Below are positions 9,776 through 43,443 of a stretch of 64,000 bases of DNA, one piece after another. The position numbers and the translations under genes were made by a program. Under the pieces are notes generated by a model, which was given only the letters and a program-made list of their open reading frames with translations, was not told the origin of the DNA and did no database searches. How positions within the stretch are numbered: the stretch's first letter is position 1; every line of letters starts with the position of its first letter. The DNA comes from Geosiphon pyriformis uo1. Its lineage: Eukaryota; Fungi; Glomeromycota. The stretch lies in contig JAAOMT010000690.1 of NCBI GenBank assembly GCA_016748015.1, positions 248,001-312,000 of the forward strand, read 5' to 3'.

Positions 9776-10998
9776 CTATTGATCTAAAGCTTCGAGAAAA
9801 ACAAAGGCAAGACCGAGGTGGGCTTTTGTAGTTAAACTGATTGGATCCCAAAAAAAGTAGTCTTCAGGATTAGAGCAAGGTTTCGCCGATTTGTCTATAA
9901 AATTATTAAAACAGGCATCTTTTGTATTTGTGATACCAGCGTACTTCTCCAAGCTAGCTGTATTGCTCTGGTATTTATTGAAATCGGCCGTGTAGATTGT
10001 GGCGTCTGGATATTTCGTCGTAAAACTGGCGATTGAATTTTTCAGAGCTTCATTATGTCTGAGATAATATTCAACCCATGATTGTTTTACGTCTTTATAA
10101 AATAATTCGACGAAAGGAAAAAGGGAGAAATCCGGAAGACTTGATACAAGGATATTTCGAACTCCGATTTCGTATAAGCTAACCCAGATTTTATAAAGTC
10201 TCTCTATAACATCCTCAGGCACTACCGTAAAGTTAGAGTATAAAAAATCTGCTCCATTGGGCCATGTCTATAAGAAAGGAAAAACCATATATTTGATGAC
10301 AACTTTGTCCGACATTTTTAATATTCATCTCTTAAATAACAAAGGAAAACGACTCACAGCTACTAAGGTTTTATTTGAAGCAATCACAGATTTCAGTGTA
10401 TCTTTGTATAATTCGACTTGTTGCTTGAGGCCTGGTACGAAAATTTTCGTTCCGTTCACTTCGAGAAAACCTATCCAAATAGATGCATACAAATTCTTAT
10501 TGGTTATAAAAACTCTTAAATTTAAATAGAAAATTTAGAATTTAGAATTTATTTAATTACCTTGAATCACTTCATTGCTTTGGTTTAATAAAAGCCAAGT
10601 TTAACTAATTGGTTAAAAAAATTTTTCAATAAAGATCGATCTCTTTCTTATTACATACTCTGTGGGTGCTTCAGAATACGCAAAGTCCTTAATCTCCGCG
10701 CCTAAAAAAGTACCAAGATATTCTGGCCACATTAGACCATTTGAATAATGGCCTTGGTAGTAATCGTCAGTAAGAAGATCAGGTCCTGCCAACTTGTAGG
10801 CATTTCCAGTATCTAGAACAATAAGCATTTACTCATTTTATCTACTAGGATACGACTTTTCTGATTTTCACACTTACCTGAAAATATATCACCAAATACG
10901 ACCAGCTTATTAAATTTTTTTTTTAACCCAGGAAAGCCATCTATCAACGAGGCAAAAAACAAAAGGGATATGAAAAATGCTAAAAAGTATTGATTCAT
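9776..10998 (-). CDS. Secreted GDSL/SGNH hydrolase-fold protein, paralog 1 (298 aa), catalytic residues lost
   Basis: Exons 10998-10878, 10812-10659, 10577-10561, 10470-10358, 10267-9776 total 897 nt in frame, all introns GT-AG. Hydrophobic signal peptide. Motifs: LVVFGDIFSDTGN, GHYSNGLMWPEYL, DFAYSEA, WPNGADF, YFFWDPISLT. Confidence 0.92.
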
Positions 10999-11734
10999 GA
11001 TGAAATTTTGGAATTTTTTTATAAGGTTCTATTTATGAGTAACGAGACAATTTATATAATTTCGGCAAAATTTTTGATCAAACTTTTTGATTTGTTTCGA
11101 CAAAGAAAATATTGTTGTAATATATCGTTACTAGCTTTTCTAAAGAAGACCTCGCAATATCGACAGAAAACATTCGAAATGTTCTGAGGATATCAAGAGT
11201 AGTTTGATAAACAAAATATTGCTTCCAATAATTTCGATGCATGAAAAAGTTGGCTCTCTGTTGTGATTTGAAATCAAAATTAGCTTCAATAGCTTGAACG
11301 ACCAATTAATAATTTATTTTGCCATGAGTTAGATATTATCTCTTTTTTGTTTATCTTTTACAATTAACCTAAGATTTATCTGTCATTGTTTCTAATTAAG
11401 CGTCCTATTGATTGAAAGGATATGACTTTTCTTGGTCAATTAAGATTAGGCTAAAATCTATACGAGCAAAAGACAATTAAGCGGATTATAAAAAACATTC
11501 CAAGTTGAAGATCGGGTAACCAAAAAATTATTAAGTTTAAACCTTCAAGCTATCTTTTATATTACGGAATGAAATAGATATGTGGATTTGATAAGTATAT
11601 AAATTACTTTTCCTAGTTAAAATATTGAATCCATAAATCATATGAATACTCATATGAATTATGTCAGTATAAAGTATGGTAATGATTTACAGTTTGCTAG
11701 CAGAATAATTAAGAATTTAGACAAGCGCCAAAAA

Positions 11735-12045
11735 ATATTCGTAAAAAAGTCATGAGACACTTTTGAGTTTTTGTAAATAATCCCATAAATGCTCTATTGG
11801 ATTCAAATCGGGTGATTGTGCTGGCCATTTAGAAAGTAAATTGAGATGTTTTTGAGCCATCATTGAACTTAAATATTGTTAATTATATCTTTGTTTTGAT
11901 TAATAATTGTTATTTTAATACATTCCCTACTATTTATAGATAGCTAATATAGTTATAAATAAATTTTTATAGATATTTTTATCATTCATGGAACACAAAA
12001 TAATAAAAATGTAAAATGTCCCATGACTTTTTTCCGCCGAGTGTA
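11735..12045 (-). mobile_element. Short internally deleted Tc1-derived element (MITE-like)
   Basis: Inverted ends AAAAAAGTCATGAGACACTTTT (~11743) and AAAATGTCCCATGACTTTTT (~12013). The internal minus-strand remnant reads KWPAQSPDLNPIEHLWD. Confidence 0.75.
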
Positions 12046-12119
12046 CATTACCTCAAAAATCCTGATACTTTTCCGATTTACTTAATTTCTACAATTTATG
12101 CACCAAATAAAAAATTACA

Positions 12120-12790
12120 TCTAATTATTATTTTATCGGCCCTCCATTTAACAGTAACACTGATTCAGTCTTCTTTGGTATTGAGACAATAACTTCCTCG
12201 AGAAAAGAGGCATTAAAATTTTCCCATTCCTCCTTTAGCGTAATTTCAGGTTCGACCACAGACTTCGGAAAGACTTCATGTTCTTAAATACTGAAGTGGA
12301 AACAAGTTGGCTTTTAAATTTTCAACCAAAGTATTTGTATTTATCATAAAATAATAATGATCCTCCTGCGAAACAACCCCGAACCATAGTATATTTTGTC
12401 CATTTTTGAAAGTAGGGACTGTCATTATTAATAAATTGACCACTATTTACCTTGCGTGATAATAATATGTAAGCTTAAAGTGAAAAAACTCTGAGTGACA
12501 AGATTGTCTTTCTTGTACATAAGAATTCCAGATGCCAACAAAGCATCAATATCTTCTAATGAACCATTATTTGCAATTCCTTCACACACTTAATAAACCA
12601 ATGTTTAGTGCACATTACAAAAGAATAAAGATTGACAATTATTGAATCTTTTGACTAAGCAATTGATCCCATTTAAATTTAATAATGATTAATACAAACT
12701 GGATTGCCAAAATGTAAACAACAGTTATTATAAAACCAAATATCAATTGGCAACTTTTTTAAATAAAGGTGGTTTTTTGGAGAGTTTTAA
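12120..12790 (-). mobile_element. Degenerate Tc1/mariner transposase relic
   Basis: Minus-strand remnants TMVRGCFAGG (MVWGCF-like) and ITLKEEWENFNASFLEEVIVSIPKKTESVLLLNGGPIK (typical Tc1 C-terminus). Boundaries approximate. Confidence 0.65.
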
Positions 12791-14256
12791 GATCTTTGAA
12801 ACTTCAGGAATAGATATCCATAAATATTAATATTATGTTTTTTTATTCGATTTTCAAGTTTTTTATTTAACTAATCCTTATTAACAAAATATCTCAATTT
12901 ATTGTAAGCTAGTAAAAAGCATATCTAATTTTGAGAAAAACTCATAATTTATAAAAATTTAATAATTAAATTTCATTTACTAATAGTTTTCATTATATAA
13001 AGCATTTATCGTAAACATTCGGATCGAGTTGACAATTTATGGGACTGGCTATTCTTTAATCCGATCCGAATATATTTGTGCAGAATCGGATCTCGTTCAA
13101 TCCAACATTTAACTATATACACAAAACCTCTTAAAACTGTAAAATATCATTAAAGAATGATCAAATTGCACTCTTAATAATTTCTTACTTTTAGATTAAA
13201 GTCACCAATATTTTTTTTCTTGAATTTTAAAAACTGTGTTATTTTCTATTGGCAATCACTATTTTTTATTTTTTTATTTTTTTAAAAAAGATTGAAAACT
13301 GTGATTTTAAGATTGATGATATCAATAAAATTTTTGGCACATTCAATTCCTTTCTATTAAGAATTCTTTGATTAAATTTTAGCTACTTTTTTTTGTTATT
13401 TATTAGCTTGTTACTCTAATATATAACAATGTAATAGTCAATAATAAAATTCTGCTGTGTATCAAATTTTCAATTTGTGAAAATAACTTGAGAATAAATC
13501 TAAAGTTAACTTGTTAATATAAAAGTAAAAATAGTAATTCAAATTAGCTTTTGGTATAAATAAATAGTTCAATATTAGCTTTGGTTAAATAAATATTAAC
13601 TGAATTGTTGACAATTAAACAAGTTTTTGTTTTTTTTCTGAATAAAATAATATTTAATTCTGTTTTTTAAAACAATTGAAAATGTATTTTTATTAAATTC
13701 TAATTTTTTTATTTTTTTATTAGGCTTTTAAAAAATTAATTGCTGATTTGTTTTAAATATTTTTGTAAAGTGAAATTTATAAATCTTTATAACATTTAAA
13801 AAATTTACATTATTTTTTGCAATTAATTTAAAATTGTTTGTAATACTTAAGAATTTTTGTTTTTATTATTGGTTAATAGTTATTATTTTGGTCTATTTTA
13901 TTTTAATCTCTATTATATAAGTAATTAATTATTTTACCATTCATACCAGAAAAAATAAAATTATATTGAATCAATTTTTTTTGTTTAATTTGTTTTAAGT
14001 GTTAAAAAAATAATAATTAACAATTCCAAAATTTTTGGAACTGGTTTAAAGAAATATATTAGTAAAAACGTATTAGCCTTATATTAAAAATATCAATAAA
14101 AAAATAGTCCCATTAATTAATTAATCTATTTATTTATCTTTAGTCAAATATCGACAAATTTTAACTACTTAAATTTACATTTAAATAGTTGCTAACTGCT
14201 TAATTAAATTTTTTTAAAAAACCGAAAATAATAAATATACATTTATGCTGTGTTTT

Positions 14257-14463
14257 TATTATAACAAAATAAAACCAAAATCAGATAAAACAAACAAAAC
14301 AATTAAATACGACAAAAATATTTTATTTTTATTTTCATAACTAGTATTAATCTGCTCAAAAGACTAGAAACAAATCCAATTGGGGTTTTTTTTTATATTT
14401 GATACTTTATAAAATAACTAAAATATTCCAGAATGTTTTATAATATTTTGTATGTTTATAACA
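14257..14463 (-). repeat. 3' LTR (more heavily mutated copy)
   Basis: Aligns by eye to 18856-19104 with mostly G>A/C>T differences and a few deletions. Confidence 0.85.
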
Positions 14464-17400
14464 TTATTTTTTCTTAAGTAATGTTTTTTAAACAAGATAA
14501 ATTTGCTAAAATACTGAATATAAAACTTTTAAATCAGTCTTAGTAAATTTACAACCTTTTAATAGCCTTAAAAATCAAGCATCTTTTTTAAAAAACCAAA
14601 TATTTGATTAGCTTAAAATACAGAATTTAATTAATTTTAAATTTAATACTGTTTTTAAATTAAATAAATGGGAATAAATTTTTTGTATAACTAAAAATAA
14701 AAAATTTGTAATAAAATTCTGAATAATAAAACTTAAAAAATTATGAATTTTATAGTATATAAGAAGTTTTAATTTATAGATTACAGAATTAATTCAAGTT
14801 TTTTGTAATCTAATTTTTTAAAAACTTTATTTTTTGATTTTTTATTGTAAAAGCTAAACTTTTATCTATTTTTAAACATTAGTGCTTGATTCTATTGCTT
14901 ATTTATTTATTTTGCATTATTTAATATTGTTTTTGAATTTAAAATTAGATTTCTTAAATTTATTTAAGTTGAATAAAATGTTTTTAAGCAGAAAATTTGA
15001 TTAATTTTTCAGCCATAAAAAAATCGATTTAAAAATTCTATTTTAATTGGTAATAATTATATTTGTTTTAAAATTAATTAACATATTTAATTTGTTTATT
15101 GGTTTAAAAAATTGGTTATAAACCAAAAGTCAAATTGTAATTTTCAATTAAAAATTTTATTTGAAAAATTATAAAGCCTAATAATATTGTAAAAATTATG
15201 ATTTTTAAGCAAAAAATAAAATAATTATTTTAATTAAATAGTTATTCACAATAAAAACCAGGTTTTTTCTTTAACTAAAAACAAATTTGTTATAAAATTC
15301 ATTAAAATAGATTTTTAAAAATATTTTGAAATAAACAAAAATTATATTAAATTAAAAAACTAATAATGTAACATTTTGAATTAAAAGCAGATATTATAAA
15401 ATTTAATATAGTCTTTAACAAACTTTTATTGTCATAATTATTAATAATTTTTAGCAACAAACTTAAAAGTTTTATTAATTTCAAAATAATTAGAAAATAA
15501 GTTATGATGGCTTTTTTTAAAACTTCAAAATATTTTGAATCTTCTAAAACATAAATTAAATTATTATAAAACAAAAGACTGTATATATACTTGAATTTTG
15601 AAGTTAATAAACCAAATATAGAAAGATTATTTAAGCATAAGCATTAAAGATTATCAATTGATTAGTAATTTTAAGTTAATATATAAAGAAAAAATAGCAA
15701 TAATCTTAAAGTATTTAGACTTAAGCAGTATAATTTATTGTTAATTGTAATTTTTTATTTTTTTTGATTTGAATTTTAAATATTATAAAAAACTGTTAAT
15801 TTTGTTTTACAGTAAACTTAATAGTAAAAAATTGAAAAATTGAAGTCAGTTATAAAGATTAACTATTAAACTTAGTGTTATTTAAAAATTTTAATTATTA
15901 TAAGGTATTAAACATTTTTGTAAATACTAAAAACAGTAAATTAATGCTAAATACCAATAAAATAATTCTGTTATTATTCAAAATTAACAATATATTAAAA
16001 GCTTTTTGTTATAAACTTCATAGTTCATTTCTAAACAGAAAACTAACATAAATAAAAAGCAACAAAATATAAATTCATATTATAATAAAACTTTTTAAAA
16101 AACAAAATCTAAAATATTAGTTTTAATAATATATGATTTTGCTAAATTAGTATAAATTAGAACAAAAGAAGTGTAAAAAATTGATTGAAATTTTTTGGTT
16201 TATTAAAATATCTTTTAAAAAAATAATATAACGAAAAATTCTATAAATGTTAAAAACAAACCATATATGTTTATTATGGTTTTTTAATTATTAAAATACC
16301 AAATAATAAATTAATCTGAAAAATAATATTTATTAAAAGGTTAAAAAATAGTAAATATATTTATAGCATATTTGAAAACTGTTTTTTATGCATACATGCC
16401 AAGTTTTTAACATTTTAAAAATCAGTTTGGATAAATATCTAAGCAAATACAGCCAATTCAAAAGATTTAAGATTAAGAGCAGTAAATGAAAATTCTTAAA
16501 TATAATCTGAATAAGACTTCGATAATTAATATAAAGCTTAGAAAAATTATCTTTTCTCTTAATAAAATTATCAGTTGAAATTTGAATTAAAATTCAACAT
16601 AAAAATATTTCTATAATTTTTATTATTAATTACCATTTTATTATTGTTTTATATTTTATTATAAATTGTTCTCTTATTATATAGTTAAATTATTAATAAT
16701 TTTTACTAATTAATAATTAAATTAATATACTGCACACATATAATATTCTAAACTATATAATATTAAAAAGTTTACTAAAATATTAAGATATTTGCTAAAA
16801 TAGTTAAAAGTTTACTAAAATATTTTATATTTTGCTAAAATATACAATTACTTCTTAAATATTAAGAATTCGATATAGTATTATAAAAAATACATAAAAA
16901 AAAAGCTTTGCTTTTTTTAAAAATGTAATTTACAATAAACATTTAACAAGTAGAATTAGTTAAAACACAAAATAAAAAAATTAATTCTTACTTAAAAAAC
17001 CAAATTACAAAAATTAATTATTTCCTATTTTTTAAACTAAGAGCTCTATAAACAATTTTAGTGGATTAATGAGTTTACTAGTTTTAAGTCTAAGTAGTTT
17101 TATCAAAATTAATAATTTATATTTCTAAACAATTTTTTTTAAAACTTATTTTATTTTCTTTCTTATTTTCTTTTATTTATTATTTATTATATATTATTAT
17201 AAATAGTTTAAACTAATTGTGTCTTTGGAAAATAACTATGACACATAATATCAAAGTTTAATAGCTAGTAAACACATTAATCTACAGTTAAAATTTCCTG
17301 TAAAAAATTTGACTTTTATTGCAAAGTAACTATGTATTTGATATAAAAAATTGGTTTTTTTATAATCTTAAAGCATCAATATTTTAAAAGATTAAAACTA

Positions 17401-18855
17401 AAAAAATTAATTTTGATAAGTTTATTAGAGATATAACAACTTTCAAAAACATTAAAATTAAGAACAAAATACTTGTAATATTATTAAAAACAAAATCGTT
17501 TTTTATCAAACATATTAACATGCTTCTAATATTTGTTTGACAATTTAAAAATATTAAAAAGTTCTGGTTTGTTAACTTTTGCTAATAAAATATAAAATAC
17601 AAATGTTAAATTGGTATAAGTTAGCTAAAACATTGGCAAAAAAGATTTTAGTAAACTTTTTATGTTAACAAATACTGACTACTTGAAAATTATTAGCATA
17701 TTTGATTTTGCGAAATTTTCAATCAATTATAATAAACAACTAATATTTTCAAAGACAATAAATTAACTCTTAATAGTTTTTAAATACATAAGATGCTGTT
17801 TTTTAATAAATGGAATATTATATATATTTTCAAAGTTTTTGTTAAGAAAGCAAAAAATAACAGTAAAATTAATTTAAAATTTGAATTTTAATAATATAAC
17901 TGAAGTTTAAGACAGAACTAAATGTTAAACAAAAACTTGGCAAAGACTTAAATTTAAAACTGAAACTTAAGTTAAATTAGAAACTTAATTTAAAATATTA
18001 ACAGAACTTTAAGTACTTAGAATATGTAATTCTTACTGTGTTTGAACTTAATTATTTTTAATGAAACTTTTACAACTTTATTAATCAACTTAATAAAACA
18101 CTAAAAGAAAATATAGCCAGATTTTTACAATATAAGCAAAATTTATTAATATAATAGTGAAATTTTTTAGCTTCTGTAAATGATTTGAAACAAGTTATAT
18201 TAATTACTATTGAAATATAGTTGACTAGTTAATCAATTGTATAAAAGTAAAAAAGAGAATTAATAAAATATTTTTAAAAACATTATTTCTTATAATATTT
18301 AAAAAGTTAATTGTTGTAATAAACTGTTTTATTTAATGGTTTTGCTGAGTGTCGTAGTATTTGATAACATTAATAACAAATCTTAAAAAAATCAAAATGA
18401 AACTAATTAATTAGAGCTTTTTTTTAGCTAATATTGTATACAAGTTGGCAAAATTTAGCAGTATAAATTATGGCAAAGTGGTTTTTTTTAAAAAAAAATA
18501 GTATAGTAGTGGCAGAAATTTAGGTCTTATCTGTATTATCAAAAGTTGCTTCAAATTCTTTAAAAAATCTTGTAAAATCTTAGAGTAATGAGAAAAATAT
18601 TTCAATTAAAGATGCAAATTATACAAACAATATACATAAAAAGTATGCCAATGCGTACAATTTGGTTAACATTATTTGAATTCAGATGCAAAAGTTTAAA
18701 ATAAAATAATTTGAACATATTAGAGCTATACAAAAGACTTTTTTAAAAAAGTGTTCTCTTATTAAACATGTTAAAAGACTTGGAAGAATTAAGCAAGATT
18801 AATCTGTTTCAAAGATATAATAGAATATAAATAAAATAATGGAACCAAATTAAAT

Positions 18856-19104
18856 TGTTATGATAAGATGAGGCTGAAATAGAACCGGAACCAGAACCAA
18901 ATAAAACAAACAAAACAACTAAACAACACAGAATTAATGTAAAGTTTTATTTTCATAATTGGTGTTGATTTGCTTAGGGACTGGAAACAGACCCAACTGG
19001 TTTCTTTTTTTCTATCTGGCATTCACAAAATAGTTTACTAAATTGCGTCTATAAGAAACTAGAATGTTCCAGAATGTTCAATGATATTTTGTATGCCCGT
19101 AACA
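18856..19104 (-). repeat. 5' LTR (better preserved copy)
   Basis: TG...CA termini with an imperfect terminal inverted repeat (TGTTATG/CGTAACA). Homologous to 14257-14463. Confidence 0.85.
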
Positions 19105-19207
19105 GTTTTATATTATAATTATAATTATTAATAAATAAAAATATTCAGTAATTTGCAATTAATTCTAACATCTTTTTATCATAAATATAATGTTAAAAAA
19201 ATAATAG

Positions 19208-19208
<1 letters not shown>

Positions 19209-19295
<87 letters not shown>

Positions 19296-19302
19296 TAATA
19301 AT
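19209..19302. repeat. (AAT)n microsatellite, ~30 units
   Basis: Long near-perfect ATA/AAT run with one AAC interruption. Confidence 0.95.
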
Positions 19303-22300
19303 ATATTTTCTTTTTAATATTGTATCTAAATATTTAAAAGAAATATAAGCAATAGTAAGAATGTAAATTCAATTTATATAAACAATCAACAAATTATTAT
19401 ATATTATTTTTTAAATATTATTTGAATAACATAAAAAATTTAAAATTGTTTATTTGATTAAGCAGAATAAAAGATTATTGAGATTTTTAATAAAAGATAT
19501 ATGACAAAAAAATCAATAATTATAATTGGTAATTATACAGAAATATGCATAAAAAATTAACTCTTTTTATTGGTAATATCGAAAAAAGTATAGGGATAAA
19601 AATATTGTAACAAATGGAAAGAAAGCATTTTATATTTAATAAAAACCATTAAATTTAAGATGCGGTATTTTGAACATGATCACGTTTAAGACTATTTTAT
19701 TAAAGTTAATTTATTTTGAGATTATTTAAAAAAAAATATGAATTTTTAGTGATATGCAATTATTAATTAAATAATTTTTTTTAATATTGTCTCTTCCAAG
19801 TTCGTTTCATTTTTATTATTGTTTTATCCTTAATATATTTGCAATTAACATGACATCTAAATTCTATATTTATAGATATTTATTTTTAAATGAGCCAGAT
19901 AAAAACTTATGAAAAGTTAGAATTTTTAATTTTTTTAAAGAAAACCGGGTACTATTTCTTATCAAACCATTGAAAAATAGTTATTTATTCTCATGATGAG
20001 AAAAATGGTTTTTTTTTTGATTTACCTGATTTAATTAAGCCTTATCAATTAATTTTCAAATTCAACTGTATCTCTATTAGATTAAATTGATTGGAGCTGA
20101 TTAAGCTTGATAGAAATATCATCAAACAATTTTGAGATCGTATCAAATCATAATATTTGAGTTTTAAAAGATGTTTATTTGTTTTAAAAATTTAAATCTC
20201 GATTTCTCAACTTTATTCACTTTCTTTTTTCGATTTAAAAAAGGGTCTGTTCTCTAAAAATATGTTTTACTAGACCTGTAAATTTTTATTATCTATAAAA
20301 AAACCCAAGCAGTCAGGAAAATTAAAAACAGTCAATTTAAACATCAAAGTTTTAGGGAATGAATCCGTCGAAGAAGAGCTCTCCTTTATTTTGAAACCCT
20401 TACCAGATGAAACAACTGTAATTTACCCACATGAAAATTTTGTGAGGCTTTATGATGTGCATTAACATGTAGTACACAATCGACCTTGTTTGGTAAATTG
20501 GTCGAACCAAATCTTTGTTAAGACGTAAATCATCAGCTGGTAATGTCATCGTTACCAACACTACTTTATCAGATTATCACAGGCGGAAACTTTATGCGAT
20601 AGCCAAATTTCTTGGCTAATTGGCAAATAAAAACTTTAAAATTGTAAAAACGTGGTTCATAAATGTTAAAAAGAAGCAAGACTAGACATCGAGTTAAAGA
20701 AATTTTGCCATGTTTTGTTTGTGAGCACTATTTTTTTTGTTATGCATTAAAAACTTTTAAAAATCAAATTTTCTTTGTGCCTATTTTGGGTTTTAGCTTC
20801 TTAATTTGTGATTTGTGATTTGTGATTCAATAAGGAGAGAATTTTGAATAGTAAAAAGTTTTCCAATGGGAATATTAAATTTTAGCGACGCCGTTTTTCT
20901 AAACTTACAAAACTTGTACTTTTAAAGCATAATTTTGATATTAAAAGCAACATATTTATTCTCTCACTCATATTTGCATTTTTTTTGTCATTTCAATTGG
21001 TAACAAACGGGTCTGAATCCTGTTCCTTTGAAAAATTACGTTTTGTGAAGAATAAACAACAGCTTAGATCTTAAAAAATTAGATTGAAATATTCAAAAGA
21101 TTTTTAAGGGTCTAAGTGTTGACTATATAGACTTCTTAATTACCAACTTAACCTATTTTTTCAAATTACATTCCATGTTTAAGATGTATTCAAATTCAAA
21201 GGTGATAAAAGTCAGCACAGTGGCATCAAACCCCTTTAAAATGTTTAATTAAGACACTATTCAAATTTCAATTACTATCTTGTTTACCCATTTATAATTT
21301 AATTGAAAACAAGTGATTTTCATGAAAACAAAGGTCTACAACATATAGTTGAAGAATCTAAAATTATATTAATTATTGGTAAAATATTTACCAATGAATA
21401 TTCACAATAAACCTAGCAAATTAAAAGCTTTAGAAAAAAAAAAATTCGAAACTGTGAGAAAATTGAAAAAGACATTAATATTTCCAAAAGTCATTCCTAA
21501 ATATTTGATTCCTTTTAATTATTATTAGAATAGTCTTTGATAAAACTTTTATTTTTTGAAGACTTAAAGAAAATATTGATTCTTCCAAAGTTTTCAGGAA
21601 TGGTTTTTGTCTATTTCCATAAAAAATAATGAGATAAAATAAGCTCATCTAGGTGATTAAGTAGTACACATGTTTTAAACATTTTAATACCCATTGTTGT
21701 TGCATAAATTTCCCGTTTTTTTTTTTTAAAGGAAAATTTCATGTTCAATGTCGCAGTGTACAAGCCTACATAGAAATTCTCCTGTTTGGTGTAATTCAAA
21801 ATTTTAAAAAGAATTTAAAATTGACAAAGTGTAAACTTTACAAATTGAATTTTTTGATCAATCACAAAACCGTCCCAAAAAAATTGTGAAATCTCAAAAT
21901 TTAATAAAAAGCTTTTATGCAGTGAGATTTATTTTTGGCGATGTTAACTTAGCCAGTTACAGTTACAATCAGAGAAATTCATCTGAATTAATTATTTCGC
22001 TGTTTGTTATCTCTTTTTGCTATTCTCAATGCGACTCTTCTTTTAGATATTCAATGGTCTCTTGCATTAGATGATGATAGTCAATTTGGACATTTTTAGC
22101 TCTAAAGGTAAATAAAACACGTTTTTATTAGTGGTACCCATACAGTTATGATTTCATTTCTTCACCAAAAAAAAAAATTTTTATGAAAAATATGAGGTCA
22201 TTTTTAGAAAGAAATTTAATTACATTTTTCAATACATGCTATTTTTGACGCAATCCCCATTTCACTGGTAGAATAAATTTTCCCGGTATACTTGTCTAAA

Positions 22301-24436
22301 TTCATGTTTATGTGGGAATTTTGATTACAAGAAAACTCGTCATTTTTATGACCTCCATAAAACGTGCTTTAGATTGCTGTTACCTTTTCCTTAAATGGAA
22401 GACACAAATACAAAACTGAACCAAACTAAGCTATCAGGAAACTAAGTATTATTTTGCCGTACCTGGGAGAATGTGGTCACTTGTTTGGAATACAAACCTT
22501 TTTTAAAAGAAAATTTTAAATAATTATCCAAACTATTTTGATGCCAAAAATTCTTAAAATTTCAATAAACTAAAAACAATCGAACAAAGACTGAGAGTTT
22601 TAGATAATCTAGTGTTGAATACAGAAGAGCAACTTTCAAGAATCTATCGACGAAAATTAGAAATTTCTCACCTTTGTGATAAAATATTAATCTCAACAAA
22701 TATAAACAAGTAGGCGGGATTTGATTTTTTTGACGGATATCTCAGTTACCGATCGATCTTCTTTTTATTAATTATTTGACAATAAACTCGTCTAAATTAC
22801 TTTGGCTTTATTCATATTCTTTGATCATAATCTCAATAGTGTTCCATTTAATACATTCACTCATGTTTCTAGAAGCCTCAAACGCAAAAATTCAAATCTC
22901 TTCTAACAAAATGGTAAATCTAGTTTTTTTCAGATAAATGTTTCTCACGCTAGAAGGTATCTTTTATACAACATGATGATTTTCTTCCATAGAATTTTCA
23001 ATAAACTTCTACCTTTTGTAAAAAGCTTATTACATGTATCATACATTCTGCATGGAGATCATTTCAAACAAATAAAGCAAAAAACTCTTACATATCCAAT
23101 CTTGAAATTCTCAAACTTCAAACCCTTTCCCTGAAGTCTCCCTAGAAGATATTTTTTTCAACTATTTTCCCATGACATCAAGTTCAAATATTCTGGTCCC
23201 CTAAGCCATTCTTATCTTTTGATGTTATGCAGAGATGCCTTTATCTGTACACATTTATAAATCAACCTTGTACAAAAAGGGTTTCACACAAAAGTACATC
23301 AGGAGAAAAGGGATTAGAAATCGGTTTTTGTCATAGAAAAAAATTCTGAATTAAAATTTTTTTCTTAAGATTCTTTTTACTTTTGAACTTTTGGATTGTT
23401 TCCTTTTTCAACTTACAATTAATTACTCAATTCTCTACTTCAGCTGTTCGCCTTCGTAAGAAACTCAACATTATTCAAGGAATTATCAAATTTATTATAT
23501 CATGCATCTATTCTTTGACAGATAAATTATGCTATTTACCTATTTCGGCCGCTACCTAAAAACTCGTGCCGAATATATGATTAGTGATAGGGCACAGAAT
23601 TTTTGCATTCCTAATGGTAAACACATACGGCGCTGACCAAAGGGGACTGAAAATTTTTTACAAATCAACTTTTCAATCATCTCTTTAATATGGATACCAC
23701 AATGATGATATTTGTACTCAATATGTCAGCCGACCATGTTTATAGGGATCACGTATCACCGAACGAAACTCCCATTATCGTTAGTTGACAAAGGGGAGTG
23801 AAGGTGGAACAATAGCCACTTATACCATTTTCCGATAAAGTCTACGAGATTATTCTAGTTATAAACCTGATTCAAACAAAACTCCGAAAATATACTAAAC
23901 AAATAAGAAACTAGCCTTAAATAAGGGTAGGCTATATCCTATTTTATCATATTTCATTCACGACTTTATTAGTGTCAAATAGGGGAAACATTTTATAAAT
24001 ACTTACGCCGCCTTTGAACCCTTTTGACGCCCCCAAAAAACAAAAAAGTTCAAAACGTCGCAGTATACGATATTTAACATGTTGGAAGTGGTTTTATATG
24101 TGTATTCGAGAGAAAGCAGTGTTTTCTGATATATGACTTTCAACAAAAACGACCAACCACAATCTTACTATTACCAATATCAACAAAACGAAGAACAAAA
24201 ATAAAATACCATCTAAAAAAACTACTCTGTTGTCCTTTACAATTAAAAGTTAAAGTCGACACAAACAACCTTTTCTTAAATATTATTTCTCCTTGAAAGA
24301 TTTATCGCGCTTTCTTTAGAGCAGCGTCCTGGGCTCTATTTGCGTTTTTAAAAAGAGAACTACCTTCACGTGGTCCGCTATTGTGTACTTTTCTGTGCCC
24401 ATTTAAATCGGTCTTCGGAGTAACAAGGCAACTTCC

Positions 24437-25822
24437 ATGATGTCTGGTGGAAAGGTAAACCGTCCAGGTGTTTATTCTTCTGTGAGGTTATATTAGATTT
24501 GATTTCGTTTAATGAGAAAGGCCCAACCGAAAGGCTCGTATACCTCTAACCAGCTTATCCAATATTATCAATTCAAAAATAGGAGCTTAAAATATTCGCC
24601 ACATGTCTTGATTTAATATTACTGTCTATTCTCCTCTACCAAGTCGTGGTGTATATGCGTCGTTACAAAGAAGACCGTTTACTATTAAAATCATGGATTT
24701 GGACAAACACTGCTCTCGAATTAGGTATTTGATGGATATAATTTGAATGCTCTAATTTTTGTCTCAATATATTTTTTGACTCTTTTTTCCTTTTTAATAG
24801 CTTCAACGGTAGTTTTAATTTTGGGAATATACTATCCAGAAGACTGGCAAGTTACTGACATAGTTATCACGAGCATAATAGTCTTTTTGTGTCAAATATT
24901 TCTTGGGTTTCAAGCCTATCTTGCGTCAAATCAAAAATGGCCTTTCATAATCGGTATTGGGAGTGCCTCAGTCTTTACATTTGTTGCTGGTATATTTTCT
25001 GCAATTAAAATTAAAAATTCTGCTCAAGCACACATTTCATATATCACGTAAGTACCAAAATTTCTCTTGTCTTCCGGAATTGAGTTGTTTATGATCAAAA
25101 AATTGATAGCTTATGCGAATTTATGGGCCAAAAGTACGATTGTTTTTCTATCCTTGTCCGCAGGACTGGACATATTGCTTGCAGTCGTCTTTTCTTATGG
25201 CTTTATTACGGTATGCAAGATTCCTTGATGTATACTTTTTATTCTAACAAATTCAAATACTTACCATAATAGATATTTTTAGGGCAAGAAAACCTTTGAT
25301 CCAGTTGCTTATCGTGTAATGCGTATTCTTCTCTTCACAATGAATTTATTAGCATTGCTAGCTATTTTGGATATTATCACGTTCGCTATGATGCGATCTT
25401 ATTCCGGAGTGTAAGTCTTTAGATTTTTCCTAGTTTCATATCATCAAACGATATTTTGAATTTGAAACTGAATTTTTTCTTTTCCATCCAAAAGAGCACT
25501 CGTCATACACGTAATATCCGTAAAAGCCTACTTACTCACGGTGCTTTGGCCCATCAACAGACGAAATAAATCGGCGAGTATTATATGCTCGGACGAAAAC
25601 CCAAAAAATCTAAAGAAAAATTCGATTGATGTTGAGCCAAGCCGTATTAGTGTGAGTAGTGGCTATGTTTATGATGGAAAAATCAATCAATTAAATGCAC
25701 CTGCGTCCGCATACATCGCTGGATCAAAATCAAGTACAATGACGTCAGCCAATCGTCTCAGCCAAATAAATTTGGGAGCAACCCATGCTGGGTATTGGGC
25801 ATCTCTAAACGATGATTGGTAA
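24437..25822 (+). CDS. Multi-pass (about 7 TM) membrane protein, fungal DUF6534-like / GPCR-like, ~321 aa
   Basis: Exons 24437-24481, 24583-24724, 24801-25047, 25135-25210, 25283-25410, 25495-25822 total 966 nt in frame. Motifs ILLYQVVVYMRRYKEDRLLLKSWIW, LSAGLDILLAVV and KAYLLTVLWPINRR, followed by a Ser-rich tail. The first exon and the intron-3 acceptor (AAG at 25134) were chosen by reading frame and are less certain. Confidence 0.8.
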
Positions 25823-28400
25823 AAAAAGATTTTGAATTTGTAATGTTGCTTGGAAACTAGCAGAGCAAAGATTTTTTCTCAAGGGGGAAATAAGGCTTTA
25901 TTACTTGGAGCCTAGCCATTAATGATTGGGCGATGATAATATCATAATTTCCAATTCTTCCGAAACGTCGACTTCCTTTAATATCAGATACCTTCTTTAT
26001 TGCTCTTTTACTTTCCTCTTTAGAATGTAAAATGGTTTTGGGCGGAGTCAATTAGTTACTCCGTGACATTCCTCATTGTAAATGTCATAGACATTCTCAC
26101 CTTCCTTGTATAAATTTCTCAGGCGATGTAACTTTTGGGCGCAGATATGATGGTTGAAAAAAATAAAATTTCGAGTTTTTCATGTACATATTTAAAACAC
26201 ATGGAAAAGATTAACAATCGGTGCTGAAGATAATACTTACTAAAATTCCATAGAATCGCTTGATGATCCATTGATTAATTTAAGGACTTACTTTCTTTAA
26301 TAAATTAGAAAGATATACATGTATAATGGGTTAGAATGGCTTTGGATTTTGATTAAAAAAGGAGTATAGGTTATTTGATAAACTTGTATACAAAAATAAA
26401 TGAATATGAAGCTATGGCGGTTTTATCTATTATTACAATCAAGTTTTATGAGTTTATTAGTTATATTAATTTGGTAAATAAAATTTTAAGCTTAACTTGA
26501 GAAAAGTTAACTAGCCAATTAATATTTAAAAATAAATAAATATGCGTCCTTAACATTAATGAATTTTATTCAGAAAATTTTTTTTAAAAAATGGATAACG
26601 TTTAAATTTGCCAAAAACTAAAAACAAAACGACTTGGCTAGGCTATTTTATGAATATGTATTCAAACGCGATGTAGCTACTGGACCATAAATTTATCTCG
26701 ATACTTTAGGAAACGAACAACAACAACAACAAATCTTTTTGGCAAAACGCTCAAATCTAAAAGACCTTTTATTGACAACACTATTTAATCCTTTAGGGAA
26801 TTAAAAAATACGGCGCAATATTTTTTAATTAATTTTTAAAAATTCTTTTGATGATATTATTTCTTATATAGTCTTGTTTGAATTAAAATTTTAAAAACAC
26901 AAGTTTTGTATAATGATCTAGTTTTAACTAATATAGATTTTTTTTCTTCACGTTTCCATTTCCTCTTCCGACTTCTTTTTTAATATAAAGGAAACTATAA
27001 TGAACTAAGCAAAAAAGGAAAAATTATAAATCCTTTTTTTCTAGCGTTAAACTATTTTCTTTCGAGGGGAAAAAATCTTGTCATTTTCATTATTGACTAT
27101 AAAGATAAAGTATAATTATGTTTCTTTCATTTGTGTTTTGAAAAAATTTCCGAATTCTAAAATTTTACTAATACATTTGCAATAATAAAAATGAAACTTA
27201 AGGTGTATAAATTTTTATTTCAAGAAAAAAATAATGATTTCTATATAATCACAAATTTTGTGTGATTATATTTTTGAAATTTTAATATGTATTTATCAAT
27301 TTATTTTATTTTTTTATTTCCTATTTAAGGGTTTACAGACCCTTTAAAATGTATCGAATTAAAAAAAAAAGTTTCTCAATTTTCAAAAAAATAAAAAATA
27401 CTAATCATGTTTATTTTAATGTCTTTTTAAATCTTTGTTAATTTCAAAATTTGCTCTTTATTTTTAGAATGAACTTCAATTCTCAAAGAATTTTATAAGC
27501 TTATTTATTCATCCGTTATATGTGAAACCTTATAAAAATTTATCATTTCAATAGCTTCATTTTTCTGACGCTTTTGACACTCATAAAATAAAAGTTTTTA
27601 AATATCTAGGTTTAATTTTGAATTTTAAATATTTTTTTTCCTTCAAACTTAGGACTTGAATTCTCTCAAACTCTTGATTTAACCCATAAAAAAATTGAGA
27701 AAATAAAATCAGAAATTCTATATTTGCCACTATTAGTTATACCATTAAAATGGGCTAAATAATTTTCCGGTTGATCTATCACAAAAAAAGTTTTATTAGG
27801 AGCTTTAATTCATGATTAAAACGCGGAGAGGCGTTTTCAATAAAAAAATTAGTTAGATTTTTTTATTCCCAATCTTTGAAAAATCTCACTTAAGTCATTG
27901 ATTGAAAAAATTAATATTCATCCACTCCATTTCAAAAAATTACCGTTATATTTGGCTTTCATACTGAAACTTGAGATTGAAATTAATTGAATTTTATTGC
28001 CTACTTATAAGTTTAAAATTTTGATGCCCAATGGAATATTTATATTAAATTACAGAGTTTGATTTATTTTCGGTAAAGTGGGATGAGGCTAATAATAATA
28101 ATAATAATAACCAATTTAGGGTAATAAATATATTTTAATAGATAGTTTTTGATCAGACAACAGTCTGGTTAAGAAAGACCATAACTAAAGCAATTCAAAA
28201 ACCTAGATTAAACCGAAATAGTTTGCTAAACTTTGAGGGTTGATGCTCCAATCGCCTAAGATCGTACAACTTGATAATATGATTTTTTCTTTTAAAATTT
28301 TTTATTTAATGCTTAAAATAACGGAATTAAATAATTTCCTCATGTAAGTTGCCCGAAATCAAATGAATCGGTTTGAAACTAATTTATACTTTAGCATATA

Positions 28401-29520
28401 CAGTGGGACAAAAAAATTAACTTTCAAATTGATTTCTCATATCATTGATATATGGTTACAAAGCCAAAACCAACTAATTTTATTAATAAAAAATTTGAGA
28501 TGTATTTCTTTCGTTTTTACTCAACCATTAACTCGCAAAGCCGTGATATCAAATTTAGTAAATTTATTAACATAGTTTTTACCGAAAAATTTTATTTTTC
28601 AACCATATTTCGTTCTAAATTATCCATATCTGGGCAATTGTTTTATACTTCAAATTAACCATTTTCCACAGATTTTCAAAAGGATTTAGGTCCGGACTAC
28701 ACGACGGCCAGTCAATTACTTCAGCTACATTTTCCGCAAGAAACGCCTTAACAATTCGGTCTGTATGCTTAGAATCGTTATTTTGTTCATAAGCGTCACT
28801 TCTTCCCAAGTAACCCATTAACTTCCCTGACATGCTGTTACAAAATTTTAACATAAAACTTAATATGTATAATACGCTGAAAACAAAATAAGCTAATTTT
28901 TCCCTTCGTACAAAAGCTGAGCCCTACGCAAAAATATTTATACAATCTTTTAGTCTTGGACGAACTGGCCGTTTTCCATTTTATCAATATTGTGTTTGGA
29001 AATAGTTGGAATGGCATTTCATTAAAAAATAAGTGTTTTTTCGGTTATAATTAAAATAAAATTTGTCCCATTCAACACCCTTCTGCTTTTAAACTTTCGT
29101 CACAATTGGTGTAGCAATTGGTAAATTTTTCATATATCTAAATAATTTTAAATGTCTGATTCCTTTGTATCTGGTTTAGTAGTAGTAATTTTTTCCAGAT
29201 ACAAAGAAGAATTTTTACAAACATGTTGACCTACTTTTCTCGATACATCCGACTACCATCACCACCTTTGTGCATTGTATCGTACAGTTGAGATAAGTAG
29301 CTTAGTGAGTTTCCTTAAATTTTGAGACGAAAAGTTCATCCTCATTCCAGAAGTCTAATACCTTACGTTCCTTGACCGACATATTTATTTCTAATGTGAA
29401 TTATGTACAAAGCTGCAAACTAGTTCTGCTTTAGAAATAGTGGAAATCCCGTTTATCACATGGGCTTTTATTTGATTCGGATGAGATAAAAAATGAACAA
29501 GTCTTATATTCAGTAACTTT
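28401..29520 (-). mobile_element. Degenerate Tc1/mariner element
   Basis: TA|CAGTGGGACAAAAAAATT terminus at 28399. Minus-strand remnants MSVKERKVLDFWNE (ATG ~29382) and EQNNDSKHT...WPSCSPDLNPFENLW. Many stops and frameshifts. Right boundary uncertain. Confidence 0.8.
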
Positions 29521-31525
29521 TGCCTGTGATACTAAATTATAATTGTTTCTTTATTGAATGTGAATGTCCGAAAAACTAAGTTGTTATTTTTTTCATGTCC
29601 AAGGACGAACTCTGGTAAAGATAAAAGTGATTAAGATGAAAAATTGTAAATCACAAAGTCTTTTACATAGTTTTTTCAAAAGATTTTAAGTTGTAGTTGG
29701 CTTATGGGAAAGGCTATTTACATTATAATTTGCAATGACAAAAAAGTATAGAATATGGATTAATAATAGAGATTTTAAGCTTTTTTAATTAGGAAGATTT
29801 AGTTACTTAACTTAAAATTATTGGATCTCTTCAAATGAAAGTTTTACAGGGCATAAATTTTGCAATAAAACATGCCTGCTTCAGTTTAAAAAGAAAAAAT
29901 TTAATTCTAAAATCATTTTTTTTGCCTAGTCTAATGCCCAATAATTTCTTAAATCATCTTTCAAAGGATTATGAATAAAAATCAGGTATTTTTTTCGAGG
30001 CTTTGTGTATAATCGATCCTATAAAGTGTTGCATCTTTATTTAAAAATACTAAAACAAGTTTGCTAGCAATAACTTTAGAATCAAGTAGCTTGAAACGTT
30101 AGATCATTTAGAAATATTTCAACAAGTCTAGTAATGCTCGAGATAATTTTCAATGTATAAATTACTAGTTTTTCCATTCAAAAATTTTTAATTATAGTAA
30201 AAAATATGAAATAAAATGTATTTTTGGATTTACGAAGAAATGGTTACTAATTCGAAACAAAGATTTTCAACTTTATAACATAAACTTTTTGTAATAAAAC
30301 TTATTTATTTATTAAGATTTTCAAATCATTTCACTTTTATTTGTATAAGTCACATTATGTAAATTTTTGAATATTTTTACTGCCGATACTTTATCAAAGA
30401 TGAATTGGAATTTTTTATTATTTATAATTTATTGATACTTTCAAAATCTTTCTAACAGAAGAATAAATTTGAAATAGCTCAAAAATAGATCAATCGTTTA
30501 TAATTTTATTTTATAAGGTCAAGAGTTTCTCAATTTTTCATGATTTGAAAAGTATTTTAAATGTTGTAATCAATATTAAATTAATCAAATGAAAAACCTT
30601 ACCATATTAAATGTTTAAATAATTTTAATAAAGGAAATATTAAATCTTGTCAATATTTTATACTAATTGAGAATCCTTCAAGATCTCGAGCATCGTTCTT
30701 GATTTGGAAAAATTTAGAAGTCATTTAATGAGAGGTATACAATTATAAATCAAGATTTCTATTTCATTCTGCTGTATGGAAGATAACTTTGATCAAGGGG
30801 TTACTCTGAATATCAGAATTGCGAAGGATAATTGATATGCGACCCCCGGAAGATTTAAACTTAATATATGTAATTTTTTAGTCACCGGATCTTCAGCTTG
30901 GAATTTTATTTATTATCGAAAAAATTCCGCCTAATTAGTTTTTAGCTTCTATAAATTTTGGATTAATCTTGTCGCCTAAAATTGTTCATATCAAATTGAA
31001 ACTCTACATATTAGGAAATCTAAATTTTGATCGAGGTTTGAGCTATATCAACAGCGAAATCGTTTAATAAGTGACAAAGAAAAAATAAATCTTTAGCTTC
31101 AGATTCGATTAAATTTTTAATTGGTCGTAAATTATACACACGAAAAGGCTTCAATTTTTAAGAGACAAATTATTGATAAGTTTTTAAGTCATTATTATTA
31201 TTGAAGGTAATTTTGATTTCAAATCACAACAGATAGTCAATTTTTTTATACATCAAAATTTTCGGAATCAATATTTTGCTTTATCAGATTAACTTAGAAC
31301 ATTTCGATCTATTATTGAATGTTATCATTAAAACTTTGACAAATTAGTACGATATTTGGAAATGATAATTCCTTCTTCGAAACAAATCAAAAATTTTGAT
31401 CAAATATTTTGACTTGATAACACTTATTATGACTATGGGAAATTTTTGCCGGAATTATATAAAATGTCTTGTTACTCAAAAAGTGAAACTATATCAAAAT
31501 TCAAAGTTTATTTTGAAATATCATT

Positions 31526-32735
31526 ATGAATCAATACTTTTTTACATTATTTGTATCCCTTTTAGCTTGTGCCTCGTTGACAGATGGCTTTCCTGGTTTA
31601 AGAAAAAAATTTAATAAGCTGGTAGTATTCGGGGATATATTTTCAGGTGAGTGTGAAAATGAAAAAAGTCTTATCGTAGTAAATAAATTGAGTCAAGACT
31701 CTATTGTTCTAGATAATGGAAATGCCAATAAGTTGGCAGGACCTAATCAACTTACCGAAGATTACTACCAAGGCCGTTATTCAAATGGTCTAGTGTGGCC
31801 AGAATATCTTGCTAGTTTTTTAAACGCGGAGATTAACGACTTTGCGTATTATGGGGCATCTACAGAGTATGTTATAAGAAAGAGATTGATAAAAGTTTTT
31901 AACAAATTTTTTAAACTTGGCTTTTATTAAACCAAAGCAATGAAGTGTTTCAAGGTTATTAGATAAATTTAAAATTCTAAATTTTTCATTTGAATTCAAA
32001 GAATCTTATACCTGATGACAATTTCTATCCATCTATTTGGATAGGCTTTCTCGAAGTGAACGGAACGAAAGTCGAGGTTCCAGGCCTCAAGCAACAAGCC
32101 AAATTATATAAAGATACACTGAAATCTGGGACTGATTCAAACAAAACCTTAGTAGTTGTGAGTATTTTTCCTTTGCTATCTCACAGATGAATATTAAACC
32201 ATATCGGAAAAAGTTATCATGAAAATCTATAATTTTTCCTTTCTTATAGATATGGGGCGGATCAGATTATAAATACTCTAACTTCATGGCAGCACCTGAG
32301 GATGTTGTAAAGAGACTTTCTAAAATCTGGGTTAGCTTATACGAAATCGGAGTCCGAAATATCCTTGTACCAAGTCTTCCGGATTTCTCCCTCTTTCCTG
32401 TCGCCGAATTGTTTTATAAGGATTTAAAACAAGTTTTGTTTGAAATTTATCTCAGACACAATGAAGCCCTGAAAAATTCCGTCACCAATTTTACGGCGAA
32501 ATATCCTGATGCCATAATCTACACAGCTGATTTCAATAAATACCAGACGAACACAACGGGCTTAGAGCAGTATGCTGGTATCACAAATACAAAAGATGCT
32601 TGTTTTAATAATTTTATAGACAAATCGGCGAAACCTTGTTCTAATCCTGAAGATTACTTTTTTTGGGATCCCATTGGTTTAACTACAAAAGCCCACCTCG
32701 GTCTCGCCTTTGTTTTTCTCAAAGCTTTAACATAA
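31526..32735 (+). CDS. Secreted GDSL/SGNH hydrolase-fold protein, paralog 2 (296 aa), catalytic Ser and His lost
   Basis: Exons 31526-31646, 31713-31866, 31938-31954, 32045-32157, 32250-32735 total 891 nt in frame. Motifs: LVVFGDIFSDNGN, GRYSNGLVWPEYL, DFAYYGA, WGGSDY, YFFWDPIGLT. Confidence 0.92.
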
Positions 32736-42789: not shown

Positions 42790-43443
42790 TAAAAATTCCT
42801 TCATTATTTACTTTCTTTTCAAAATTTGAAAGATATCCAGAAAGTTATACGCTAAACTTGGAATGTGTCTACGAGATGAAAAATTGATTCGAATGAAAAA
42901 AAAAATAATATTGTCCAGAAGATTTATTAAGGTTCAAATATGCGTCAATTTTATGTTTTGTTTTTATATTGTGACTTATCATCCAAAAAAAAACTTTTGA
43001 AACTTTGAATAGTCAATTAAATAAGATTTTTTTCTTCTTTTCGACAATATGTTTATCAAAAATATTCCTCGGCTTTTGCTAAGATTAGAATCAAATTCAC
43101 TTAAGGTTCCAGGTATCACCACTTAAAAGAAGTATTTTTAAATAAATAGTTGAATTCTAACGGAATATTCAATGAAAAATTCTTAAAGAGTTACAATTTA
43201 TGAAGGGATTTGTTTAATTTAATATTTATATATTTCGGATTCTAATTTACATAATTTTAAAATTGTAATCACAATTACTAAAATTTAATAATAATTATCC
43301 CCACACAGGATATCCATCACCTTTGTATATCTCTAATTTTTGATGATAAATGTCTTTTTTGAGAAATTACAAAATATATCTTAATATGTTGATAAGGAGA
43401 TTTTAACCGAACGAGACGGGAAAATTTTAAAACATTCACTCCT

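Follow-up and report, generated by a model that had tools for sequence, protein, structure and literature searches.

GDSL genes without catalytic residues in Geosiphon pyriformis

Why would an apparently secreted protein of an esterase family be kept intact once the residues required for hydrolysis are gone? This question is raised by a 64,000-nucleotide stretch of AT-rich DNA of the fungus Geosiphon pyriformis uo1 (assembly GCA_016748015.1, contig JAAOMT010000690.1, positions 248,001 to 312,000; here called the window), which carries Sel1 and Tc1 remnants together with five genes for GDSL proteins. A sequence-only reading had pointed out that 2 of these, paralogs 1 and 2, lack both the catalytic serine and the catalytic histidine, and had proposed that they are maintained non-catalytic proteins. 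Both losses stood, but the set turned out to be larger, as a third sister (p0) with the same double loss lies just outside the window. We consider it very likely that p0, paralog 1, and paralog 2 (the trio) are maintained pseudoenzymes. The best overall explanation, which we regard as likely, is that they are pseudoenzymes kept by selection that are secreted and act by binding.

Each of the five genes in the window comprises five exons, among them a micro-exon of 17-23 nt, separated by GT..AG introns and with open frames. In paralogs 1 and 2, four GT..AG introns and a 17-nt micro-exon give frames of 298 and 296 amino acids with no internal stops. A residue-for-residue check found our models of paralogs 1, 2, 3, and 5 (also p1, p2, p3, and p5) to be identical to the NCBI proteins, with paralog 1 corresponding to KAG9287032 (G9A89_022996) and paralog 2 to KAG9287034 (G9A89_022998). 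The splice sites, micro-exon, cysteines, and unbroken frames reported earlier for these 2 genes were confirmed. A full-length search yielded p0 (G9A89_022993), as well as p6 (G9A89_002656), which is found on another contig and retains Ser and His. Paralogs 1 and 2 share 79% identity, and the copies without Ser and His are 70-76% identical to their Ser/His-keeping sisters. The canonical paralogs 4 and 7 are more distant (35-39% identity), with paralog 4 being approximately 37% identical to paralog 1. The genes are as follows:

9776..10998, minus strand: paralog 1, G9A89_022996, 298 amino acids; exons 10998-10878, 10812-10659, 10577-10561, 10470-10358, 10267-9776
31526..32735, plus strand: paralog 2, G9A89_022998, 296 amino acids; exons 31526-31646, 31713-31866, 31938-31954, 32045-32157, 32250-32735
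L002:10001-11219, minus strand, 2.3-3.5 kb or so to the left of where the window starts: p0, G9A89_022993, third copy without Ser and His
61851..63056, minus strand: paralog 5, G9A89_023002, 299 amino acids, Ser and His kept
36237..37504, minus strand: paralog 3, G9A89_022999, 306 amino acids, outgroup sister to the five-gene clade
41513..42804, minus strand: paralog 4, 300 amino acids (local model), the sole canonical S-G-N-H copy in the window

The loss extends beyond the serine and histidine

The codons given in the sequence-only reading for the Ser and His positions of paralogs 1, 2, and 5 are all correct, but its account of the loss was incomplete. In paralog 1, all four SGNH residues have changed (Ser to Ile, Gly to Glu, Asn to Ala, His to Ser), while paralog 2 carries Ile for Ser, Ser for Asn, and Gly for His and retains the block II Gly. 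In p0, Val (GTA) replaces Ser, Asn (AAT) replaces His, and Ala is found at both the block III Asn and the block II Gly positions. The block V Asp is retained in all three. The positions concerned are:

10885..10887, minus strand: paralog 1, nucleophile position (block I), ATA, Ile38
10670..10672, minus strand: paralog 1, oxyanion Gly position (block II), GAA, Glu88
10250..10252, minus strand: paralog 1, block III Asn position, GCA, Ala141
9836..9838, minus strand: paralog 1, catalytic His position (block V), AGT, Ser279
31637..31639, plus strand: paralog 2, nucleophile position, ATA, Ile38
32262..32264, plus strand: paralog 2, block III Asn position, TCA, Ser
32676..32678, plus strand: paralog 2, catalytic His position, GGT, Gly278
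62945-62943, minus strand: paralog 5, Ser, TCA
61913-61911, minus strand: paralog 5, His, CAT
62330-62328, minus strand: paralog 5, block III Asn position, Ser

Both residues are nearly universal among the aligned homologs, the block I Ser being kept in 238 of 262 and the block V His in 256 of 262. As the copies are 79% identical and represent three separate genes with a coherent series of replacements, chance, sequencing error, and allelic copies were ruled out. Around the lost triad, the flanks have turned hydrophobic in the trio (Ser to Ile/Val, Tyr to Phe/Val, Gln to Ile/Leu).

The acyl-enzyme mechanism of SGNH hydrolases needs the catalytic residues. Compared with an active SGNH hydrolase, the trio is missing the block I Ser, the block V His, and the block III Asn, and from this established chemistry its members are predicted to be unable to run the mechanism. 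In the SGNH lipase SrL, mutants of Ser, Asn, or His were each devoid of any activity (PMC10779480).

Paralog 5, which had served as the active reference in the sequence-only reading, did not hold up in that role, since it lacks the block III Asn itself. The same replacement by Ser is found in p6, while paralog 3 retains Ser, Asp, and His and carries Val at the block II Gly and Gly at the block III Asn position. With the block III Asn gone, the closest Ser/His-keeping sisters may be weak enzymes themselves. Paralogs 3, 5, and 6 have retained the triad along extended branches, which suggests that these proteins still take part in catalysis in some way, perhaps by means of a modified oxyanion hole. 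The proposed enzyme plus pseudoenzyme system is possible.

A single loss preceded the divergence of the trio

The split between (p0, p1, p2) and (p5, p6) received 100% support. When paralog 3 and homologs from other fungi were used as outgroup, the trio formed a clade (support 99/89) sister to (p5, p6), with p3 outside, and this clade was still recovered with most catalytic sites masked (92/80). The nucleophile codons of p0, p1, and p2 are GTA, ATA, and ATA, against TCA in the Ser-keeping sisters, and their His codons are AAT, AGT, and GGT, against CAT, a series in which each step is one substitution (CAT>AAT>AGT>GGT). Together, the clade and the codon series indicate that Ser and His were lost once, before the copies split, and that the freed sites went on changing. 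After a gene of the GDSL/CE16-like family had been duplicated in Geosiphon, one copy lost Ser and His and then underwent two further duplications. As to the order of the splits within the trio, codon-based maximum likelihood (ML) grouped p1 with p2, and protein trees grouped p0 with p1.

Each replacement had been said to need two nucleotide substitutions, which holds from end to end. However, the path of the His codon is stepwise and a single change suffices to kill either residue, TCA>TTA being a plain C>T change. The two substitutions are therefore no evidence of selection.

A recent transfer from the Nostoc partner was rejected as the source of these genes. Cyanobacterial GDSL proteins are 27-33% identical and form a clade of their own, and transfer is also contradicted by the five-exon structure common to the Geosiphon and Ambispora genes.

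The trio has been under purifying selection since the loss

Evidence for maintenance came from ML branch models over 295 codons (GY-F3x4, MG-F3x4, and MG-F1x4), in which the ratio of nonsynonymous to synonymous rates (dN/dS, omega) was 0.47-0.53 for the trio whichever of the three was used, and differed from 1 with p 1e-5 to 1.3e-4. For the intact pair p5/p6, omega was 0.44-0.50, and the difference between trio and pair was not significant (p 0.84). Values from pairwise counting were similar, at 0.41-0.46 for comparisons among p0, p1, and p2 and 0.38 between p5 and p6. Purifying selection on the trio is therefore about as strong as in the Ser/His-keeping sisters. Among its members, p0 is the most constrained (omega 0.34-0.39, p <=0.001), and the p2 branch has an omega of 0.42-0.47 (p 0.01-0.025). 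The connecting stem has an omega of approximately 1.0.

The same conclusion was reached with a neutral simulation of 1000 runs, for which rates and branch lengths were taken from the genes' own introns. Its synonymous counts (36/40/43) agreed with those of the genes (45/41/43), whereas nonsynonymous differences numbered 71/61/72 against a neutral expectation of 111/126/136. Approximately 14 stop codons would be expected under neutrality and none were seen, and no run out of 1000 gave the observed ratio or zero stops. Likewise, the introns of the trio show 6-7 indel events in 332 columns while the exons contain no frameshifts, which has a probability below 0.005 even at one third of the intron rate. 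A truly decayed copy on the same contig, a duplicate of paralog 7, has 6 frameshifts and 92:18 nonsynonymous to synonymous codon changes.

At the sequence level, the trio thus combines the features of pseudoenzymes: catalytic residues lost within an intact frame, and purifying selection after the loss. The earlier proposal of maintained non-catalytic proteins is borne out by a dN/dS below 1 after the loss, the lack of stops and frameshifts, an intact predicted fold, and an independent second origin, the last 2 of which are described below.

Several points weigh against this conclusion. The expected dN/dS below 1 was found for the trio, p0, and p2, but paralog 1 taken alone is indistinguishable from neutral (terminal branch omega 0.68-0.75, p 0.2-0.3), and constraint on this copy may be in the course of relaxing. 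The paralogs have probably exchanged some sequence by gene conversion (p 0.01). Conversion from intact paralogs was nonetheless rejected as the cause of the low omega, because the sites separating trio and pair span the whole gene. Positive selection received only weak backing from branch-site tests (p 0.09 for the stem and 0.03 for trio plus stem, both uncorrected). Furthermore, the trio proteins are known from one assembly only, secretion rests on a hydropathy heuristic, and AlphaFold confidence obtained with a deep alignment is no proof of folding in vivo.

The scaffold is conserved while the former active site drifts

The family-conserved scaffold positions are kept about as well in the trio (31-33 of 41) as in p5/p6 (31-32 of 41). 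At the conserved active-site (pocket) positions, the trio keeps 12-15 of 21. Within the trio, 17 changes were counted over the 31 sites of four active-site windows and 70 over the 245 sites elsewhere; taken by itself, the difference in site counts is not significant (Fisher p 0.09). The active-site figure is near the expectation from the neutral simulation, which is approximately 0.6 changes per codon. With the scaffold constrained and the old catalytic loops changing at a near-neutral rate, the selected function would most likely rest on the folded domain and on surfaces other than the catalytic centre.

Differences on the stem are enriched in the pocket (9/31 against 17/245 elsewhere, p 0.0007). 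With paralog 3 as outgroup, however, about five of these nine were assigned to the trio, three to paralogs 5/6, and one was ambiguous. A redesign of the pocket is therefore unproven, the enrichment being only partly the trio's doing.

An AlphaFold model of paralog 1 had a predicted local distance difference test score (pLDDT) of 93 and a predicted template modelling score (pTM) of 0.87. Foldseek matched it to ChoE, CE16, and PlaA (E 1e-14 to 1e-17), and template modelling (TM) scores of 0.72-0.77 were obtained against ChoE, thermolabile hemolysins, PlaA, and fungal CE16. The full-length proteins have a precomputed match to PF00657, and exon 5 alone matches it with E-values of 9e-4 and 8e-3. 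The alpha/beta/alpha fold and blocks I, II, III, and V in order place the proteins in the GDSL/SGNH superfamily. PlaA of Legionella, ChoE of Pseudomonas, the thermolabile hemolysin of Vibrio, and fungal CE16 share with the trio the fold, blocks I-V, and a disulfide loop before block V. PlaA is the best sequence match of the family profile (E 1.6e-39), the CE16 structures 7ztn and 8p1g are matched with E 5e-17 to 2e-16, and a homolog in Rhizophagus irregularis is named CE16. By modelled fold and descent, the trio members belong to the PlaA/ChoE/CE16 subgroup of GDSL/SGNH proteins and differ from these relatives in lacking the nucleophile, catalytic His, and oxyanion Asn, at 18-24% identity in structural alignments.

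Predicted secretion and a shared upstream block

The signal peptide reported earlier for paralogs 1 and 2 was recovered as a hydrophobic N-terminal segment, and its basis is a hydropathy heuristic: the 11-residue Kyte-Doolittle maximum is 2.8 in paralog 1 and 2.4 in paralog 2, with the heuristic positive at residues 5-15. The hydropathy of the C-terminal helix reaches 2.2, in dead copies and intact sisters alike. A scan of the C-termini found no retention signal, including that for the endoplasmic reticulum (ER). Sequons at 103 and 130 and two cysteines are retained in all five close paralogs, the cysteines of the disulfide loop being 254 and 266 in paralog 1 and present in paralog 2 as well. 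Given the signal-like N-terminus, the two sequons, the disulfide pair, and the lack of a C-terminal retention signal, the trio is probably secreted. It would enter the secretory pathway and act by binding rather than by hydrolysis.

An invariant block (longest-run permutation p 0.002) is found upstream of all five close paralogs, and it holds a near-palindromic 13-mer. The 13-mer occurs three times in the window, each time 270-330 bp ahead of a paralog:

11264..11276, minus strand: upstream 13-mer of paralog 1, inside the longest invariant block; candidate regulatory site
31214..31226, plus strand: upstream 13-mer of paralog 2
63380..63392, minus strand: upstream 13-mer of paralog 5
L003:9679-9691: upstream 13-mer outside the window

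In p0, the core of the 13-mer is present and is followed by a deletion. A second palindrome-like block lies approximately 130-170 bp ahead of the start codons. The upstream block hints at maintained regulation.

Catalytic residues were lost more than once

Among 244 homologs with both the Ser and the His columns filled, 5 had lost both residues, and all are from Geosiphon: the trio, G9A89_022380 (L005:10001-11287), and G9A89_007688 (L006:10001-11387). The latter 2 are old genes without Ser, Asn, and His, and G9A89_007688 additionally lacks the block V Asp. Both are intact five-exon genes, share 33% identity, and have signal-like N-termini, although that of G9A89_007688 is weak. They group together (98/95), apart from the trio, and forcing all five double-loss proteins into one clade was rejected (approximately unbiased test, p-AU 0.0008). 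Judged from these gene trees, the double loss has at least two independent origins in the Geosiphon genome. Both genes of the older pair are still intact although their branches measure 1.1-1.35 changes per site. A Lipase_3 gene was observed near both of its loci.

Partial losses were found as well. A Geosiphon GDSL gene 6 kb from G9A89_022380 (L005:2199-3625) carries Asn for His with Ser kept, as does a GDSL protein of Ambispora gerdemannii in its His position (Asn for His; L007:10001-11216), whose gene adjoins a lipin gene, and one Gigaspora copy has Asp replaced by Val in block I. Of the approximately 13 family members seen in Geosiphon, at least 5 lack Ser and His and one more lacks His. 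The double loss is provisionally Geosiphon-specific; this is provisional because the census was biased by Geosiphon-seeded queries and by clustering, with other fungi thinly sampled. A metagenome scan with an exon-5 alignment returned distant matches only (22-42%) and no ortholog of the trio.

What the pseudoenzymes might do

Two explanations would make the trio something other than maintained pseudoenzymes. The Ser two residues downstream of the nucleophile position and a His in the C-terminal helix could act as a shifted catalytic pair, a case that the sequence-only reading had named as one that would overturn it. All three copies possess these residues as well as the block V Asp, and variation among SGNH active sites is documented (PMC9487903). 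However, the 2 residues are the norm in ordinary enzymes of the family (Ser+2 in 206/262, the downstream His in 229/262), and PlaA, in which both are present, shows no activity as the S30N mutant (bioRxiv 10.1101/2023.03.24.534060). In addition, His285 lies inside helix 282-297 of the AlphaFold model and the oxyanion Asn is also gone, so that rescue in this way, and with it the possibility that these proteins are still enzymes, is very improbable. Alternatively, they could be duplicates from a birth-and-death process that have not yet been hit by a stop or frameshift. The family does shed copies, as the decayed duplicate in L001 illustrates, and paralog 1, with all four SGNH residues gone, cannot be told from neutral. 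Against such slow decay stand the loss predating the three-way split with a post-split omega of approximately 0.5 and no stops or frameshifts, the trio-separating patterns along the whole gene, by which conversion from active copies fails as an explanation of this conservation, and the long intact history of the older double-loss pair; we consider it improbable.

For maintained pseudoenzymes, several binding roles can be considered. A wall or interface protein, which would bind a polymer bearing acyl or acetyl groups, or else the surface of a partner, without cutting it, is the one that we favour, at somewhat less than even chances; candidate surfaces would be the fungal wall, the Nostoc sheath, and possibly a plant host. 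A companion or chaperone in the secretory pathway, with dead copies binding active relatives or cargo and aiding their folding, traffic, or solubility, would fit a scaffold held under constraint while the catalytic centre drifts, the clustering of dead copies with Ser/His-keeping paralogs, and their common upstream block, and has plant precedents in MVP1/ERMO3 (PMC3947992, PMC4757993) and non-catalytic SCPL companions (PMC13415971). The C-termini lack an ER-retention signal, however, and three mutually diverging copies exceed the needs of one chaperone job, making this role unlikely. Capture of fatty acids or lysolipids from the photosynthetic partner in the old acyl channel is attractive because Glomeromycota have no fatty acid synthase (PMC11134847); moreover, the best solved relatives (PlaA and thermolabile hemolysins) hold C12-C22 fatty acids in this channel, and residues beside the lost triad have turned hydrophobic. 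This reading is weakened by a Leu after the His position in all three copies, which corresponds to PlaA P283, as the P283L substitution narrows the acyl channel of PlaA and shifts it to shorter chains (bioRxiv 10.1101/2023.03.24.534060). The former active-site loops also change at about the neutral rate, and a carrier role appears doubtful, more so than a companion role. Finally, the proteins could be decoys, drawing off an inhibitor or a protease that targets active paralogs. They are apparently secreted, clustered with Ser/His-keeping sisters, and 70-76% identical to these, and an omega of approximately 0.5 is compatible with partner-driven change. As the oxyanion Asn is missing from the nearest sisters, which may themselves be weak enzymes, and as literature searches gave no Nostoc or plant inhibitor of fungal GDSL enzymes, this explanation loses force; the canonical paralogs 4 and 7, at 35-39% identity, are too distant for obvious mimicry. 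We regard a decoy role as having little chance of being correct.

Genomic context

Paralogs 2 and 5 lie within an inverted 2.8-kb duplication block (30890-33735 against 60920-63718, 73% identity), which reaches approximately 1 kb downstream and has a related piece at 7443-7891. The NCBI model of paralog 4 (G9A89_023000, 284 amino acids) uses a distant start and omits the first exon, which carries the signal segment and the block I Ser; the five-exon, 300-amino-acid reading agrees with the paralogs and is canonical. The decayed tandem duplicate of paralog 7 (L001:14850-16037) is a mosaic. It differs from paralog 7 by 2.7% in the introns and by 15% in the exons, with most exon differences in the last one, a pattern suggesting either conversion or an origin as a chimera. 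A further GDSL fragment lies near L001:13185-13328.

A Tc1/mariner element is situated 500 bp downstream of paralog 1 (7978-9279). Its 156-bp terminal inverted repeats are 96% identical to each other, and its transposase (HTH_Tnp_Tc3_2, DDE_3) is broken; another DDE_3 fragment is found at 28618-28923. At 3700-4330 lies a Sel1-repeat gene that has decayed and whose tandem period is 108 bp. Between the paralogs, two genes without a confident Pfam match were called on the plus strand, at 24437-25822 (312 amino acids, hydrophobic, probably a multi-pass membrane protein) and at 45932-46634 (190 amino acids). An AAT microsatellite of 34 copies (19200-19303) lies inside a region, at 13-20 kb, that is especially rich in AT (GC mostly 14-19%).

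Relation to known pseudoenzymes and significance

Reuse of an SGNH scaffold for binding is exemplified by the OSK domain of Oskar, which has this fold but no catalytic residues and binds RNA. Oskar is an intracellular germ-plasm protein of insects and belongs to an SGNH subgroup other than that of the Geosiphon trio. In Phytophthora, PsXLP1 is a secreted paralogous decoy of a wall-acting enzyme. In beetles, dead GH28 paralogs are reported to be kept in an expanded family of secreted enzymes at the host interface (PMC6549527). Both cases concern glycoside hydrolases for which a link to an inhibitor was demonstrated or proposed, whereas no such link is known for Geosiphon.

The closest parallel in kind is MVP1/GOLD36/ERMO3 of Arabidopsis (At1g54030), a GDSL protein with a signal peptide that has lost the block I Ser, has no lipase activity, and has a non-catalytic role (PMC4757993, PMC3947992). 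As MVP1/ERMO3 is a known maintained case, GDSL pseudoenzymes are not new as a kind, and 3 of the 116 GDSL proteins in Arabidopsis were reported as such (PMC4757993). The plant protein has only Ser replaced by Gly and acts in vacuolar/ER trafficking with PYK10, whereas in Geosiphon Ser, His, and Asn were lost, with at least two origins and subsequent multiplication; the likeness implies no orthology. Literature searches found no description of GDSL pseudoenzymes in Glomeromycota. What appears to be new is that such proteins, apparently secreted and shown to be under selection, evolved repeatedly in a fungus, namely the one that takes up Nostoc.

The Geosiphon-Nostoc symbiosis serves as a model of how arbuscular mycorrhiza arose. 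That secreted CE16/PlaA-like esterases were repeatedly converted into non-catalytic binders serving the endosymbiosis, by sheath recognition or lipid carriage, is a speculative idea that we hold to be doubtful. If true, these binders would be candidates for partner recognition or lipid uptake in this fungus-cyanobacterium endocytobiosis. If expressed in the bladders, the double-loss genes would be assayable candidates for the secreted Geosiphon-Nostoc interface. The family offers a compact natural series of canonical, Asn-less, triad-less, and decayed copies in which the transition from enzyme to pseudoenzyme may be studied, and it carries a warning that counts of CE16/GDSL genes would overstate the esterase capacity of these fungi.

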